Notes: a model not told the origin generated them from the letters alone. Shown: positions 24,822 through 30,467, counted from the first letter of the stretch. The stretch is 64,000 bases of DNA from Orbicella franksi (GCA_964199315.1 OZ116711.1:2480001-2544000), one strand, 5' to 3'. Numbers and translations: made by a program.

Positions 24822-27800
24822 ATGGAATATTTAGCACCAGAGCACCAAGATCTCGCTATACAGGGACTTTATGAACTGCGATCGAAGCTTCCGTCGGTTC
24901 AAGAGGATGTCTTCGAGAAGGTGAAAGCGGAAGAGTTATCATTTCCCAGAAGCTTCAAACTAGCGCAAGAGAACATGAGTAAAAACCTGCCAACGGCTTC
25001 ACTTATCTGGGAATACATGCTTGACAAGGCCGAGAACAAGCAACAGAAATTTGCGATCATGAACAAACTCTTCCAAGTTCAGATCGCAACCGGGCCATGG
25101 AGAGCCGCTTTAGAGACAGCTCAGAGATTATTCAACGAAACCATTGCGGAGTACTCATCGGAGAATGCGAGTCGACAGACAGCAACTGAAGGAGGTTTGG
25201 GTACGTTAAATTGAAATTTTCGTCGTATTTCTGTTTTTGCTTTTAGATCAGGGACCAAATTAAAGAACATATGATCTTGTCGTCAATCTTGTCAGGGAAT
25301 TTGTCTACTTCCGCTTTCGTGCATGTCGATCAGTTCAGTTGATCAGTCACGCACACAAAGGTTGCTACGTGACCAGAGGGATTTCGGAACTTTTCCGAGA
25401 ATCCCTAAAAACGGGCGTTATCAAGTCACGCTAAGTCATGGTGTCAATCAAGTTCATACTAAACCCCTGCAAGAGTTAAATTCATTGACTGAGAAACGAA
25501 AAAGAAGCGAGGCTGAGAAATTTAGCTTCACGTTTCTTTCATGTTTCTTGCACGATGGACTAAGAGAAAAGAGGGGATGCTCATAGTACAGACAGCCTTT
25601 GGACTCGTCTCGCATTCTTCCACCAAGATAGCCCCTTCCAGGCGTTCAGTTAGTTGGGACACAGTGCAAAATTCAGCGGAGTGAAATAAGGGAGAGAGAC
25701 GCTTAGTGCGAGGAGCAAACGAACATTAAGTTCTCTTCCCTTGCCGCGTAGGTTCGATTTCCGCCGCTCTCTCAGGTTCGCGTGACTTTTCGCACCGCGC
25801 TTCTCCCCTATTTTTTCGTGCGCCATTTTGCGTGCGCCAATTTTCGTGCGCCCCAACTAACTGAAACGGCCCAGAAGAGACTACCCCCAAGAAGGGAGGA
25901 AGATCTGTGATTTTAAAATTTCAGTTTTTTCCGGACTATAGTAACAGCTAATCCTGGGAAGTGTGCCATAGCCTTTCCTGTAAATCAGTGCCGGAACACT
26001 CTGGTACCAAAATACGCATTAATTTACAACCCTTAAAAGGTTTGACGAGCATTCCCTACTGTCAAGGAGTCTCCCAGAAAATTGGTAATGGTATTGCTCT
26101 GGACTCACTTCAATTTTGCCGATCTGATTTGTTTTCTTGATGTTATTTTCCACAGACTCTCTTCTGACAGCGCCGCAATTATTCGATGCTTGTCTGGATC
26201 TGGGGTCGATACATCGTCTGCTTAAAGAACTAAACAAGGCGGAACAGTTGTATAAGAAGGCCTGGGAAATTGCTGTGTCCATGAAGGATTTTAAAAAAGA
26301 AACCTTAGCTAAGATACATCTTGCAGTCTGCCTTCTCGATCGTGGAGAACTAAAAGAGGCCATTAACACCTACTTTGAGCCGCTGATGGTGTTTAAAACC
26401 GCCATGAAAAAGCACACAAGAGCTCTTTATCTACACTACTATGGTGGTGCATGCCGGTCTGCGGCAGACTGGGGCAGAGCTAAAGAGTATCTCCGGGAGG
26501 CCCTGGATCTAGCAAAAGAAGTGAAGGATGTCGGGCTTGTGTCGAGCTGCTGTGGTGAGCTGGGTAATGTTTTCAGATCGGAAGGAAGGTGAGTCATTGA
26601 TCGCGTGAGAGTTGCAATGTCCTTATATTCTTCAAAATTAGGCTACCAAGAATCAGGATATCAAAACGTACTCGTACACCGACAAATTTTAATGTTAATC
26701 GAAAACAAACAATTATGCGAGGGGACTGCATTGAAACCGTTTGAGTTAGCTAATTCGGATCACCTTCGAATGAGAGGGCAAAAAGCTTATTATTTCACAG
26801 CTGTGTCCTCAATAACACAGCCTGTGAACAGGCTCCGGCTACTTGGATCTGGCCGCGGCTGAAAGGGTTGGCTGTGAGTGAAGTGGTCGACGGGGGAATG
26901 GGGTGGGGTTGGGGCGTTCCTCTCTCCTCTTCTCTTTCTTCTCTCCTTCTCTTCGCCCCATCCTCAACTAGAGAACCTGTTCACAGGCTATAAATAGCAA
27001 TTTAAGATTTAAATTCTCATGTATACATTCCTTCGTTTCAGATACAAAGATGCAGAGAGACTTCACACAATTCATCACAACTTCGCTTTGAACAGAGGAG
27101 ATGTTCATGGCCTGGCAATCTCCTGCGGTAATATCGGCTTCTTGAAGTTTTACAATCCTGAGGAGTTTGACGATTCTGTAATGTACCAGTTCATTGAATA
27201 CTCTCTTGCTGAACAAGTGGGTGATTTTGCTCGCACGGGCATCGCATTCAACAAAATTGGAAAGCTTTATACAACAATAGGCTACAACGAAGAAGCCGTT
27301 ACCATGTTTCAAATTGCACTGGATGTCTCTCGAAGGGCCAGCAACGTCGCAGGTGAAGGAATGGCGTGGGGAAATCTAGGCACAGTTTACAGAGAGTTGG
27401 AAAGATTCGAAGACGCTATCGCTTGCCATATAAAATACAGAGACAATGCTGAAAGACGGATGGACATCGGTGGAGTAGCCATCATGCAGCATCAGTTAGC
27501 AATGGATTATCTGCTGAGTGGAAAGCTACCAGAAGCAGAGAGATCCATTCTCAACGCGTTTGAAACCCTGGAAAAGATCCGTGCACAGATCGGCGAGGAA
27601 GACAAATCAAAGCTTTCGAATTTTGAGAAGAATCAAGCCGAAGCATACAACCTGTTGCAAGTTGTTCTCGTCGCCCAACTGAAGTATAAAGAGGCGTTAG
27701 TATTGGCGGATACCAGCCGAGGAAGAGCACTGGCCGAAATTGTTCGTAAGCGATTACACGGAGATAAATCCGCTGAAAAAGAAACGACTTCTCTGAATGA

Positions 27801-30467
27801 AGAATTTATAGAAGAATCCTTCAATAACCTGCTGGAAGTCAGTCGTAAACTCTCCACAACGTTGGTTTTTTACTCCGTGGTGAAAGAATTTGACGAGTCT
27901 GGAGCGTTCTACAGTTGGGTCTACGCATGGGTATTGCATCCATCTGGCAGCCTCGATTTCAGTAAATCTCGTCTGAAGCATGGCATCCGGGATACTAAGG
28001 TTGAAGTCAATGATGAATTTCTGGTGTCCCTTAGACGGTCCATGGGTCAACCATCCCAAATAAAGGACCTGGGCAAAATCCTCAGAGGCGAAAAGAACCC
28101 TGGCGTCTCCAGGGAGGCGAAAGTGTACGTGACAACTCTCCAAAGCGAAGACGTGTTGAACTCGCTAAAAGGACTGGAACACATGTTTGCATCAGGCCTG
28201 AGTCTAACTAACACCGAGAATGGAAAAAATCTCAGTTTGGATCGGGAAGAGGGACTACATCATCGACCTAGTTTTCAGAACGACACAACTTTACACGAAA
28301 GTGACACCCACATTGACAAGAATTTTAACCTTGAGCCCAAATCAACAGACCAGCAAGCATCGTGTGCACTGAAAGAAACAACCACAGCACAACCAGGCGC
28401 AACTGACGGGACCTGCTCGGAGAATAACGAAGAAAATTCACAAACAGAAACGAAAGAAGAGCAGGACGTTTCGAAGAGAGAAGACTTGTCAGAAGCCTCC
28501 TTCTGTGGGTCACTGAGCCAGAGCGAAGGTATTGTCCCGCAGCTGCAAACACCAGACAGCGAAGGGTCTAACACTCCACCACAAGGTGAAATTCAGACTG
28601 AAGTAGAGGAGAATTCTGTGAATTCAAGTTGTGACGTCCCTGAAAACACATTTTCTCTTGATAGCGTATCTGAGCCCCCGAGCGTTCATTCAAAACTAGA
28701 AACAGCCAACAAAGAGACATCTAGTGAAAGTCGTATTGAAGTAGAGAATGATGAGTTGGCTTCTGTGACAGCTAGTGATTCCAAGGCAAATGTGCCAGGC
28801 CCTTTTAATGACGTCGTGTCTGAGTCCTCAAATAAGCATTCAAGAAGACATGATGAACGTGAGAGTGACCCTGAACTGGACCCGTGGAGACCAATGCTAA
28901 GCCAGCTTCATAAGGTTCTCATAGAACCTATTGTGGAATTCCTGCCATCTAAGGATGAGAATCCACGAGTTACTTTCATTCCTCAAGATTTCTTGCTCAA
29001 AGTTCCCTTTGCTGCGCTGCAAGGCGACGCCAGAGATCATTACATCATGGAAGACTTTGTTATCTCGACCAGTCCAGCGATCCACTTTCTCGAACTAGCC
29101 TGCACCTCTCGTGAAAGCCCCAAACACACCCCAGCGCCTTTTGAACTGAGTCTTCTCGCTGTCGGAAATCCCACAATGCCTTTCGAAGAGCTTCCCCAGC
29201 TTCCCTCTGCCCAGCGCGAAGTGCGCATGATCAACGAGATTATTGACTCGCCGGAGTCACAAGTGTTTATTGGGTCACGTGCCAAGAAGAAGGATGTGAT
29301 GGCAGCCATGCCAAAGCATAAAATACTACACTTTGCCACGCACGCTATTATTGACGACGCAGACTCCCGCGGCGATTTTAGCATGAAGGGCCTCATTGTA
29401 CTGACGAAGTCTGGGCTCGAATGTAACGGTATTCTGACGGCCGAGGAAGTGAGAGGTATGGAACTAAATGCTGAACTTGTGGTACTAAGCTGCTGTGAAA
29501 CGGGACTGGGTAAAGTGACAGGAGATGGAGTACTGGGTAAGTTTTTGAATCATTAAAAAAGTCCTTTCAGCTGAAGCACCAGTAGGACTACGAGTAGTCC
29601 CTCTTTCGCTTAGTCCGTGGAGCGAGACCATAAATAAACAACGACGAAATAATGGTGGCGTGAAATCCTCTTGTCGAGTCACCCTCAGGATTTCGCGCGG
29701 CCATTCTTTTCTCGCGGTTTTCTTTCTCGTCACGCACGACGGACTAAGCGAAAGAGGGACTGCTTGTAACCCAAGGCACCAGCAACTCTAGCCCAGTTGA
29801 TATCAGCCTAGTTCAGTTAGGACTTTTAGTACATATTCGTTATTAATTGGACTTGAACGCATTTTGCGACCTTGATTCTTGTATTTAAGTCTCTTGCTTG
29901 TTCGGGTAGTTGAACAACTAAATCTTAGCGCGTTCGTCGACACCAATTGATTGGCTTACTTTGAGCATGCGGATGCAGTTAATTCTAGACTCCCTCTTCA
30001 ACTCCTATTAAGGGAAGGGAAGGGTGAGTTCAAGGACTGAACTCATGCGCAGAGACTCATGCGGATATTAGGTACCCGATATTCGGGAGGTACGTTATGT
30101 GTACACCTGAGAAGTGCTGGGTCGGGAAGCGCTTATTTTGATCGTGTACGCAGTCCCGTAGCGACTCTTAATATAGGCGTGTTCATATCGTATTAAACGG
30201 AGTTCAGAAATAACACCTGGTTCTGTTTACACAGGTCTTTCACGCGCATTTCTGGCGGCTGGCGCCGCTTGCGTGATTGTCACGTTGTGGAAGATTGACG
30301 ACCGATCCGCTTGTGACCTCATGACGGCCTTTTACCGAGAATACAAGGCTTCCCGTGATGCTGCGGTATCGTTACGAAAGGCCATGAAGATTCTTCAAGC
30401 AAAAGACAACACACGAAGTCCTCAGCACTGGGCTGCGTTCTCCATTGTCGGCGTTACTGGTGTTTAA
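24822..30467 (+). CDS. TPR-repeat plus CHAT (caspase-like) domain protein, TTC28-like, copy A, 4 exons, about 1179 aa
   Basis: Exons 24822-25200, 26156-26588, 27042-29536, 30235-30467 (3540 nt, phases 1/2/1). TPR-like units (AWGNLGTVYRELERFEDAIACH), CHAT motifs IPQDFLLKVPFAAL, ILHFATHA, LVVLSCCETG, RAFLAAGA, TLWKIDD, PQHWAAF. Confidence 0.9.
29596..29761. mobile_element. MITE in intron 3 of copy A
   Basis: TIRs agtccctctttcgcttagtccgt / acggactaagcgaaagagggact. Confidence 0.75.

Follow-up and report, generated by a model that had tools for sequence, protein, structure and literature searches.

An intact TPR-CHAT gene of the coral Orbicella franksi belongs to a distinct, low-copy animal lineage that keeps the predicted catalytic His/Cys dyad

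A stretch of 64,000 nucleotides from the coral Orbicella franksi (GCA_964199315.1 OZ116711.1:2480001-2544000), hereafter called the window, was analyzed. On its + strand, at 24822–30467, it carries a gene, named copy 1, which encodes tetratricopeptide repeats (TPRs) and, at the C-terminus, a CHAT domain. Copy 1 is an intact, spliced, and weakly transcribed gene. Sequence comparison places it in a low-copy animal lineage of deep origin, marked by His-Ala and Ser-Cys-Cys, and its His/Cys dyad matches in position the residues of an experimentally validated CHAT protease. Taken as a whole, copy 1 was read as an intact gene of a low-copy, dyad-bearing lineage whose product would be a latent cysteine endopeptidase, and the probability of this reading was put at roughly 60%. 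The family was already known and annotated; the new element is a distinct, conserved lineage that bears the dyad, in contrast to the Cys-less TTC28.

The window was free of N runs. The exon junctions of copy 1 were read after coral and sea-star 'TTC28-like' proteins had been mapped onto four window blocks (Table 1), and the coding sequence comprised 3540 nt, encoding 1179 aa with one terminal stop; all introns were of the GT-AG type. The interval singled out in the initial annotation of this DNA, 27042–30467, was the part of the gene that starts at the first base of exon 3 and ends with the stop codon. The model was collinear with models at NCBI, including the Stylophora XP model P0017. It was also collinear with P0253, a transcript-like protein of 1201 aa from a public run assembly, which was 85.6% identical to the whole copy 1 model and opened with the same MEYLA residues. 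Furthermore, polyA RNA (run X23) covered exon 3 and exon 4 with the 3′ end at 1–6×, and the depth was zero at 29801–30200, in the interior of intron 3. From this read gap together with the GT-AG sites and the spliced orthologues, it was concluded that intron 3 is spliced in O. franksi. The position of the intron appeared to be conserved, since the genomic open reading frames (ORFs) of many other corals also stopped just past GDGVLG. In six RNA runs from six studies, 51–62% of the words of the stretch were present. Contamination was considered as a source of copy 1 and was ruled out, since the gene has introns, lies among animal genes, and is represented in polyA RNA. In addition, two segments, 29586–29720 within intron 3 and 30527–30676 just 3′ of the gene, showed summed DNA-run contig depths of 20,000–90,000, and numerous reads had loose ends there. 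Both resemble an interspersed repeat of very high copy number, similar to a short interspersed nuclear element (SINE) or a miniature inverted-repeat transposable element (MITE), and the RNA reads at these sites could not be assigned to copy 1.

The CHAT domain was recognized by the Pfam profile PF12770 on the ORFs 27019–29556 and 30273–30467, with a cut-off of 24 bits. In copy 1 the profile was matched over the whole domain, with the match split by intron 3, and the spliced orthologue P0253 scored 210 bits over profile positions 2–288. The motifs ILHFATH and LVVLSCC stood where the initial annotation had put them, and the Pfam match that includes them was far beyond chance. In an alignment of 33 CHAT domains from coral, sea star, own-genome paralogues, and bacteria, the His and the second Cys of Ser-Cys-Cys fell in the near-invariant columns of the bacterial HG and SAC motifs. 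The profile of this alignment matched the solved structures of DdvA (8rot, 1e-12), the Craspase TPR-CHAT (7e-10), and Csx29 (7.5e-8), and it placed the window His and Cys on H539/C581 of 8d9f_A, equal to H585/C627 of the full-length Sb TPR-CHAT. These two residues are the catalytic dyad of Craspase, for which C627A/S mutants were used in cleavage assays (PMC9729208). A misaligned dyad, which had been named beforehand as fatal to the prediction, was thus not what the profile gave. With phmmer, the exon-3 CHAT part retrieved nothing meaningful from the PDB sequences, and the profile search alone succeeded.

The structure of the domain was judged from an AlphaFold2 (AF2) model of the Desmophyllum orthologue P0058 (residues 435–737), which was 86% identical to the window protein in the exon 3 part and 83% in the exon 4 part. 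The mean predicted local distance difference test score (pLDDT) was 84.4 and the predicted TM-score (pTM) was 0.87. In the model, His161 followed the strand 155–159 and Cys212 followed the strand 206–209, and the two strands were adjacent. Foldseek gave Csx29/Craspase as the top match (E 5.5e-11), followed by DdvA, separase, and SAVED-CHAT, and later by gingipain, MALT1, and caspase-9. Accordingly, the Pfam alignment and the orthologue model both agreed with the earlier assignment to the caspase/separase clan, and copy 1 is predicted to have an alpha/beta fold of this kind with the His and the Cys after adjacent strands.

Gly after the catalytic His is near-universal in clan CD, whose motif reads His-Gly...Ala-Cys. 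Copy 1 differed from it in having His-Ala and Cys-Cys, which by alignment is a variant of the motif and not a loss of the dyad. The Ala had been flagged at the outset as a caveat, correctly, and it proved to be a trait of the whole lineage. The dyad and its flanks were invariant in 11 full-length members from three phyla, in the blocks LHFATH and VVLSCC.TG..VTGDG from coral to amphioxus, and invariant residues also ran throughout the TPRs of these proteins. Moreover, nearly all coral orthologues kept the dyad. Between copy 1 and its tandem duplicate, copy 2, the ratio of nonsynonymous to synonymous divergence (dN/dS) was 0.13 in CHAT, 0.30 in the TPRs, and 0.32 overall, with a dS of 0.11.

Table 1. 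Features of copy 1 and position of copy 2 in the window
Feature	Coordinates	Strand	Description
Exon 1, copy 1	24822–25200	+	start codon MEYLAPEHQ...; aa 1–126; GT donor at 25201
Exon 2, copy 1	26156–26588	+	AG/GT boundaries; first TPR repeats (TPR_7/TPR_12/TPR_1); tblastn matches of orthologues
Exon 3, copy 1	27042–29536	+	rest of TPRs, meander, linker, two thirds of CHAT; GT donor at 29537
Intron 3	29537–30234	+	GT..AG; splits CHAT after GDGVLG; high-copy repeat at ~29586–29720 inside
Exon 4, copy 1	30235–30467	+	C-terminal third of CHAT; stop codon 30465–30467; polyA RNA coverage
N-terminal helical region	24822–25200 (exon 1), aa 1–126	+	orthologue model 1–118 helical, high pLDDT
TPR solenoid, remainder to ~aa 510, and connecting helix	27042–27861	+	TPR_12 E 1.7e-10
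Three-stranded beta meander, aa 545–582	27862–27975	+	orthologue strands 541–551, 557–566, 572–578
Acidic disordered linker, 297 aa (583–879)	27976–28866	+	Ser/Thr/Glu-rich, net charge −27
CHAT, N-terminal two thirds with both dyad residues	28891–29536	+	PF12770 E 3.6e-37, 128.8 bits, profile 2–213
CHAT, C-terminal third (exon 4)	30235–30467	+	PF12770 E 3.1e-13, 50.2 bits, profile 227–288
His1038, predicted catalytic	29341–29343	+	second His of ILHFATH (29323–29343), followed by Ala
Cys1088, preceding Cys	29491–29493	+	within LVVLSCC
Cys1089, predicted catalytic	29494–29496	+	last Cys of LVVLSCC (29476–29496)
Copy 2, tandem duplicate	31536–37476	+	exons 31536–31914, 32907–33341, 34159–36755, 37244–37476

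The genome was searched with the CHAT part of the window, which returned copy 1 at 100% identity, copy 2 at 89% with stops, and everything else at 26–36%; the close copies thus numbered two in the 497-Mb genome. An exhaustive HMMER search (E ≤ 1e-3) yielded 27,657 relatives. After the coral orthologues, the best matches were 42–50% identical to the window CHAT, and HG/SAC was present in 111 of the 140 matches ranked 11th–150th. The named proteins among these HG/SAC matches were prokaryotic, mainly cyanobacterial (Coleofasciculus, Nostoc, and an IMG AAA+/CHAT protein), and the window CHAT was about 45% identical to cyanobacterial CHAT domains. The combination of His-Ala and Ser-Cys-Cys occurred in about 12 matches, among them an amphioxus 'TTC28-like' protein of 1182 aa, and occasional His-Gly members were found within the otherwise His-Ala lineage. 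The named coral members with this combination came from Stylophora, Acropora, Porites, and Desmophyllum. In addition, an Oculina protein matched the region of exons 1–3; its model stops before CHAT and so displays no dyad. Echinoderms were represented by the sea stars Acanthaster and Patiria and the brittle star Amphiura, and amphioxus by three Branchiostoma species or hybrids. The lineage is therefore wider than the 'cnidarian' scope first given to it. No vertebrate, insect, or mollusc name was found at E ≤ 1e-20 in the word-based search; as this search is incomplete, the absence is not proof of loss. Identity in the TPR region was about 60% across coral families and about 38–40% when compared with sea stars and amphioxus, and numerous columns were invariant. 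The best non-coral match was P0098, a CHAT/AAA+ ATPase protein of 2498 aa from an IMG metagenome (44% identity, E 3e-54). It was of prokaryote type and contained two CHAT-like motif sets, each with His-Ser for His-Gly. The AlphaFold database clusters that were retrieved were for the most part bacterial CHAT clusters.

The canonical TTC28 was like the window protein in being an animal protein with TPRs, CHAT, and the HFATH His motif, whereas it was different in its length (2100–2600 aa), its long C-terminal extension, its replaced Cys, and its separate clade. The CHAT domain of TTC28 was internal (1385–1717 of 2481 aa, and about 1300–1780 in fish and insect proteins), and that of the 1179-aa window protein was at the very C-terminus; the window CHAT was 25–31% identical to the CHAT of fish and insect TTC28. 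The TTC28 of this coral was located with the post-CHAT C-terminal fragment of fish TTC28, which gave one match in the genome. The gene lay on another contig (C12:2466199–2489901, − strand). Over about 1600 aa its product shared 50% identity with the TTC28 of fish and insects, including a giant exon (2467785–2472515) of 1577 codons without stops. In the coral protein, the His was kept in HFATHVSW, and the Cys site read LVVIGAAH, with no Cys. The HFATH His was also kept in fish and insect TTC28, and Ser-Cys-Cys was replaced by Arg-Leu-Tyr (LVVLRLYP) in fish and by Ser-Trp-Ser (VVVSWSH), Ser-Ser-Gly, or Ser-Ser-Ser in insects. The lack of the Cys that had been stated for human TTC28 was thus confirmed for the fish, insect, and coral proteins, that is, for non-human orthologues. 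Judging from these replacements, the TTC28 lineage lost the catalytic Cys before the cnidarian/bilaterian split, and TTC28 is probably an ancient pseudo-protease. Since C12 carries a separate canonical TTC28, copy 1 is not an orthologue of that gene, an identity that would have refuted the initial annotation.

Previous studies described a mass expansion of TPR-CHAT genes in corals. The expanded family has 276–304 genes in Acropora and 362 in Pocillopora effusa, its TPRs are highly diverged, and catalytic residues or protease activity were not mentioned (PMC12314368). A 'TTC28-like' expansion was reported in Montipora (PMC9145168), and an apoptotic role was suggested for coral TPR-CHAT genes (PMC6208414). 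With these reports, and with orthologues of copy 1 annotated as 'TTC28-like', the word 'undescribed' in the initial annotation had to be given up. In the present genome, the PF12770 search yielded at least 135 scored loci (278 candidates) with CHAT complete and uninterrupted in an open frame. The open frames of the expanded family ranged from hundreds to 2700 codons, and many were in arrays, such as C1:43228856–43577278, C1:37.3–40.7 Mb, and C14:8.68–9.08 Mb. All 10 sampled loci contained H-x-A-[AT]-H-G (nine HxAAHG and one HIATHG) and LSCC[HN][ST]. The window protein had the TPR and CHAT architecture of the coral DCP family (PMC12314368), and the two also shared Ser-Cys-Cys, an intact dyad, and tandem duplication, which happened once in the window. 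However, the expanded family was intronless, had His-Gly, was 26–36% identical in CHAT, and grouped with TTC28; its diverged TPRs contrasted with the conserved ones of the window lineage. Moreover, the window gene, with its two close copies, stood outside any highly duplicated clade, and the expanded proteins, together with anemone and octocoral proteins, joined the TTC28 clade (100/99).

Outside CHAT, the full-length structure was judged from an AF2 model of the orthologue P0253 (residues 1–1196, pTM 0.60), not of the window protein. The Pfam search of the window ORFs gave no match in the N-terminal aa 1–126. The model contained about 19 TPR-type helices at 129–507, and the copy 1 protein had about 9–10 TPRs. 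In Foldseek, the TPR part of the model resembled LGN/GPSM2-type peptide-binding TPRs (about 22% identity, TM about 0.6 by target), and the overall layout resembled separase, Csx29, and DdvA. Residues 581–895 of the orthologue had a pLDDT of 25–40 and no confident structure, and CHAT followed at about 900–1192. By sequence comparison the linker is fast-evolving, with a dN/dS of about 0.97 between copies 1 and 2 and in-frame differences of +99 and +6 nt in copy 2. The 99-nt difference lay at 35642–35740, with copy 2 the longer. Part of this segment was present in P0253 (LKEET...PS.GIVPQL), and the difference may thus be a deletion in copy 1 rather than an insertion in copy 2.

CHAT proteases described elsewhere are latent until they are switched on via a partner or sensor part. 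By analogy with Craspase/Csx29, separase, and the fungal Q2L-6, the copy 1 protein is probably a latent cysteine endopeptidase. Its TPR array would bind a protein or peptide partner, or autoinhibition would be relieved, and the protease would thereby be switched on; the disordered linker could perhaps also take part in the gating. Once active, the protease would cut a single specific substrate or a small set of them. Csx29/Craspase (8eey, 7y9x, 8d9f, 7x8a) was like the window protein in its N-terminal TPRs, C-terminal CHAT, and aligned His/Cys. It is a latent protease that is switched on allosterically, by target RNA (PMC9729208), and the window protein is likened to it in this respect by analogy. 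However, the two were 15–18% identical, with His-Gly/Ala-Cys in one and His-Ala/Cys-Cys in the other. Craspase is gated by Cas7-11-crRNA-target RNA and cuts Csx30, partners that are absent in animals, and it is without the 297-aa disordered insert of the window protein. In Podospora, the isolated CHAT of a protein that begins with TPRs and ends with CHAT (at least 1005 aa) processes the neighbouring gasdermin (PMC8851545). This Podospora anserina Q2L-6, of about 1000 aa and active as an isolated CHAT, resembles the window protein in layout. The bacterial gasdermin-linked CHAT proteases (Roc-COR-CHAT, P0DV49) were structural matches. Both Q2L-6 and the bacterial genes adjoin their gasdermin substrate. 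Separase (5fc3, 7nj1, 9hn4) matched both the CHAT and the full-length models and likewise has helical repeats followed by a clan CD domain. It is a regulated latent protease of a distinct family, with 9–16% identity, a far larger helical region, and control by securin and CDK.

The alternative that survived best was a non-catalytic scaffold, in which CHAT would be a structural or binding module as in TTC28 and the protein would be a TPR adaptor. It was regarded as unlikely, although the fold of CHAT has persisted in the Cys-less TTC28 for hundreds of millions of years, so that non-catalytic uses exist, and although copy 1 has His-Ala in place of the clan CD His-Gly. The same comparison gave the strongest indirect argument for catalysis, because the Cys is dispensable in a non-catalytic CHAT, as its loss in TTC28 indicates, and yet it is kept in the window lineage. 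The His, both Cys, and the surrounding invariant blocks were retained from coral to amphioxus, whereas the same region decayed in TTC28, and the dN/dS of 0.13 in CHAT also argued against a mere scaffold. As for the Ala, it was fixed across the lineage apart from the occasional His-Gly members. In caspases, the residue following the His supplies a backbone amide, so Ala need not abolish catalysis. Several points nevertheless weigh against a latent endopeptidase encoded by copy 1. The Ala in place of the clan CD Gly might change or weaken catalysis, and no proteolysis by any animal CHAT protein was reported in the searchable literature. The support for the fold came from the model of the Desmophyllum orthologue, with the His and Cys placed by strand position, and gating by the TPRs is an argument by analogy. 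In addition, the RNA depth was low, and no spliced reads over intron 3 were listed among the polyA reads at this depth of 1–6×.

The tandem duplicate was relevant to a further alternative. In the window self-BLAST, copy 2 appeared at about 31.3–37.5 kb with 85–96% nucleotide identity to copy 1, and all four exons and splice sites of copy 1 were retained in it. The HFATH motif began at 36548 and the LSCC motif at 36704. Compared with copy 1, exon 2 held 2 additional nt within an A9 run at 33265, which shifted the frame, and there was a loss of 5 nt at 36289 and a gain of 2 nt at 36365; a TGA at 36329–36331 lay inside the shifted stretch, upstream of the His and the Cys. The earlier statement that the dyad was present in both copies was therefore right for the motifs, and the reading frame of copy 2 is broken upstream of them. 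The A9 run was matched exactly by a contig of run X1, which may be the assembled individual itself, and an independent run with another species label had A8 at this site, which is out of frame too. PolyA RNA on exons 1–2 of copy 2 was about 0 in run X23. Copy 2 is probably a young pseudogene, and because the dN/dS in CHAT was 0.13, it seems to have been long constrained and inactivated recently. Linked pairs of copies were also found elsewhere: P0017 and P0060 of Stylophora were on one 116,787-bp scaffold, and P0033 and P0048 on one 661,364-bp contig; P0060 was without the His motif. The pairs of other corals were 72–85% identical, compared with 88–94% for the window pair, and on this ground the tandem duplications look independent and recurrent. 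With the frameshifted copy 2 and the two Stylophora copies on one scaffold, the local duplication and turnover proposed in the initial annotation was upheld.

This turnover would fit an effector of immunity or cell death that is gated by a ligand, such as a gasdermin activator that turns over like an innate immune receptor, as had originally been suggested. Bacterial and fungal TPR-CHAT or Roc-COR-CHAT proteases act in gasdermin activation or CRISPR defence, one copy of the window pair is decaying and the linked copies of other corals have diverged independently, and GSDME is present in corals (PMC13475620). However, just two close copies were found in the genome, with the next paralogues at 26–36% identity. 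The conserved TPRs (dN/dS 0.30) were the opposite of a diversifying sensor, and it is the intronless family that diversifies. The sole gasdermin-domain match in the genome was on another contig (C15:8850795), and coral GSDME was reported to be cut by caspase-3 (PMC13475620). No link to a sensor or substrate gene, such as Cas7-11/Csx30 or an adjoining gasdermin, was found, although in animals a test by gene neighbourhood carries little weight. Nothing found here supports a role in immunity or with gasdermin, and this explanation was considered improbable.

In the maximum likelihood (ML) tree of CHAT domains, the support was 100/98 for the window lineage, 100/99 for canonical TTC28, and 98/92 for the expanded cnidarian family. 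The expanded family grouped with TTC28 (100/99), and the window lineage fell on the bacterial side of this split. The simplest reading of the sequences is that the window lineage is a third, slowly evolving animal CHAT lineage. A separate acquisition from bacteria, from a cyanobacteria-like TPR-CHAT and independent of the TTC28/expanded lineage, would also account for the position in the tree, for the patchy distribution among named animals, and for an identity of 42–50% to many HG/SAC proteins, which exceeded that to any own-genome paralogue. It was nevertheless held to be very unlikely. By the approximately unbiased (AU) tests, one common clade of the animal sequences was not rejected (p 0.12 for an earlier data set; p 0.28, with a log-likelihood difference of 3), and for this reason no separate bacterial origin is claimed. 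Furthermore, Ser-Cys-Cys also occurs in the expanded cnidarian CHAT family, copy 1 lies among animal genes and its introns are spliceosomal, and the identities are equally expected from slow evolution alone. A broader and rather doubtful proposal is that the lineage represents the one animal CHAT protease which has stayed active and low-copy since before the cnidarian/deuterostome split, gated by a partner, with a specific substrate, and maybe descended from a cyanobacteria-like TPR-CHAT. It would have been retained in corals, echinoderms, and amphioxus, whereas the named vertebrate and insect proteins included just the Cys-less TTC28.

The weakest explanation, that the window gene is a plain TTC28 orthologue or an ordinary member of the published coral expansion, was suggested by the NCBI name 'TTC28-like' of its orthologues, by the Swiss-Prot structural top matches (human and mouse TTC28, Q96AY4/Q80XJ3; TM 0.74–0.77, 27% identity), and by a layout of TPRs then CHAT as in the expanded family, and it was highly improbable in view of the coral's own TTC28 on C12, which is closer to fish and insect TTC28, the low CHAT identity to TTC28, whose CHAT is internal and Cys-less, and the tree, in which the window lineage (100/98) is separate from the joint clade of TTC28 and the expanded family (100/99).

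As for the rest of the window, the other genes are presumably STK11, PRP38, and a TGF-beta ligand; these are the labels of a first reading of the sequence. The window self-BLAST also revealed dispersed repeats of about 245 nt (4432–4678, 45351–45597, and 50603–50844; 83–93% identical), short tandem duplications (52096–52327 and 54844–55148), and inverted-repeat, self-complementary stretches (18551–18748, 43159–43544, and 59527–59941).

Animal CHAT proteins are widely annotated as 'TTC28-like', and with hundreds of them in corals, experiments are hard to aim. The CHAT genes of this genome fall into three lineages, namely the Cys-less TTC28, the mass-expanded family, and the small dyad-bearing lineage of copy 1. 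The third lineage therefore offers a tractable, essentially single-gene candidate for an active animal CHAT protease and its target. If copy 1 were inactive, it would merely be another annotated member of the TPR-CHAT family. If it is active, a protease of the caspase/separase clan would be added to animal cell biology, and it would perhaps be missing from vertebrate models, as no named vertebrate member was found.

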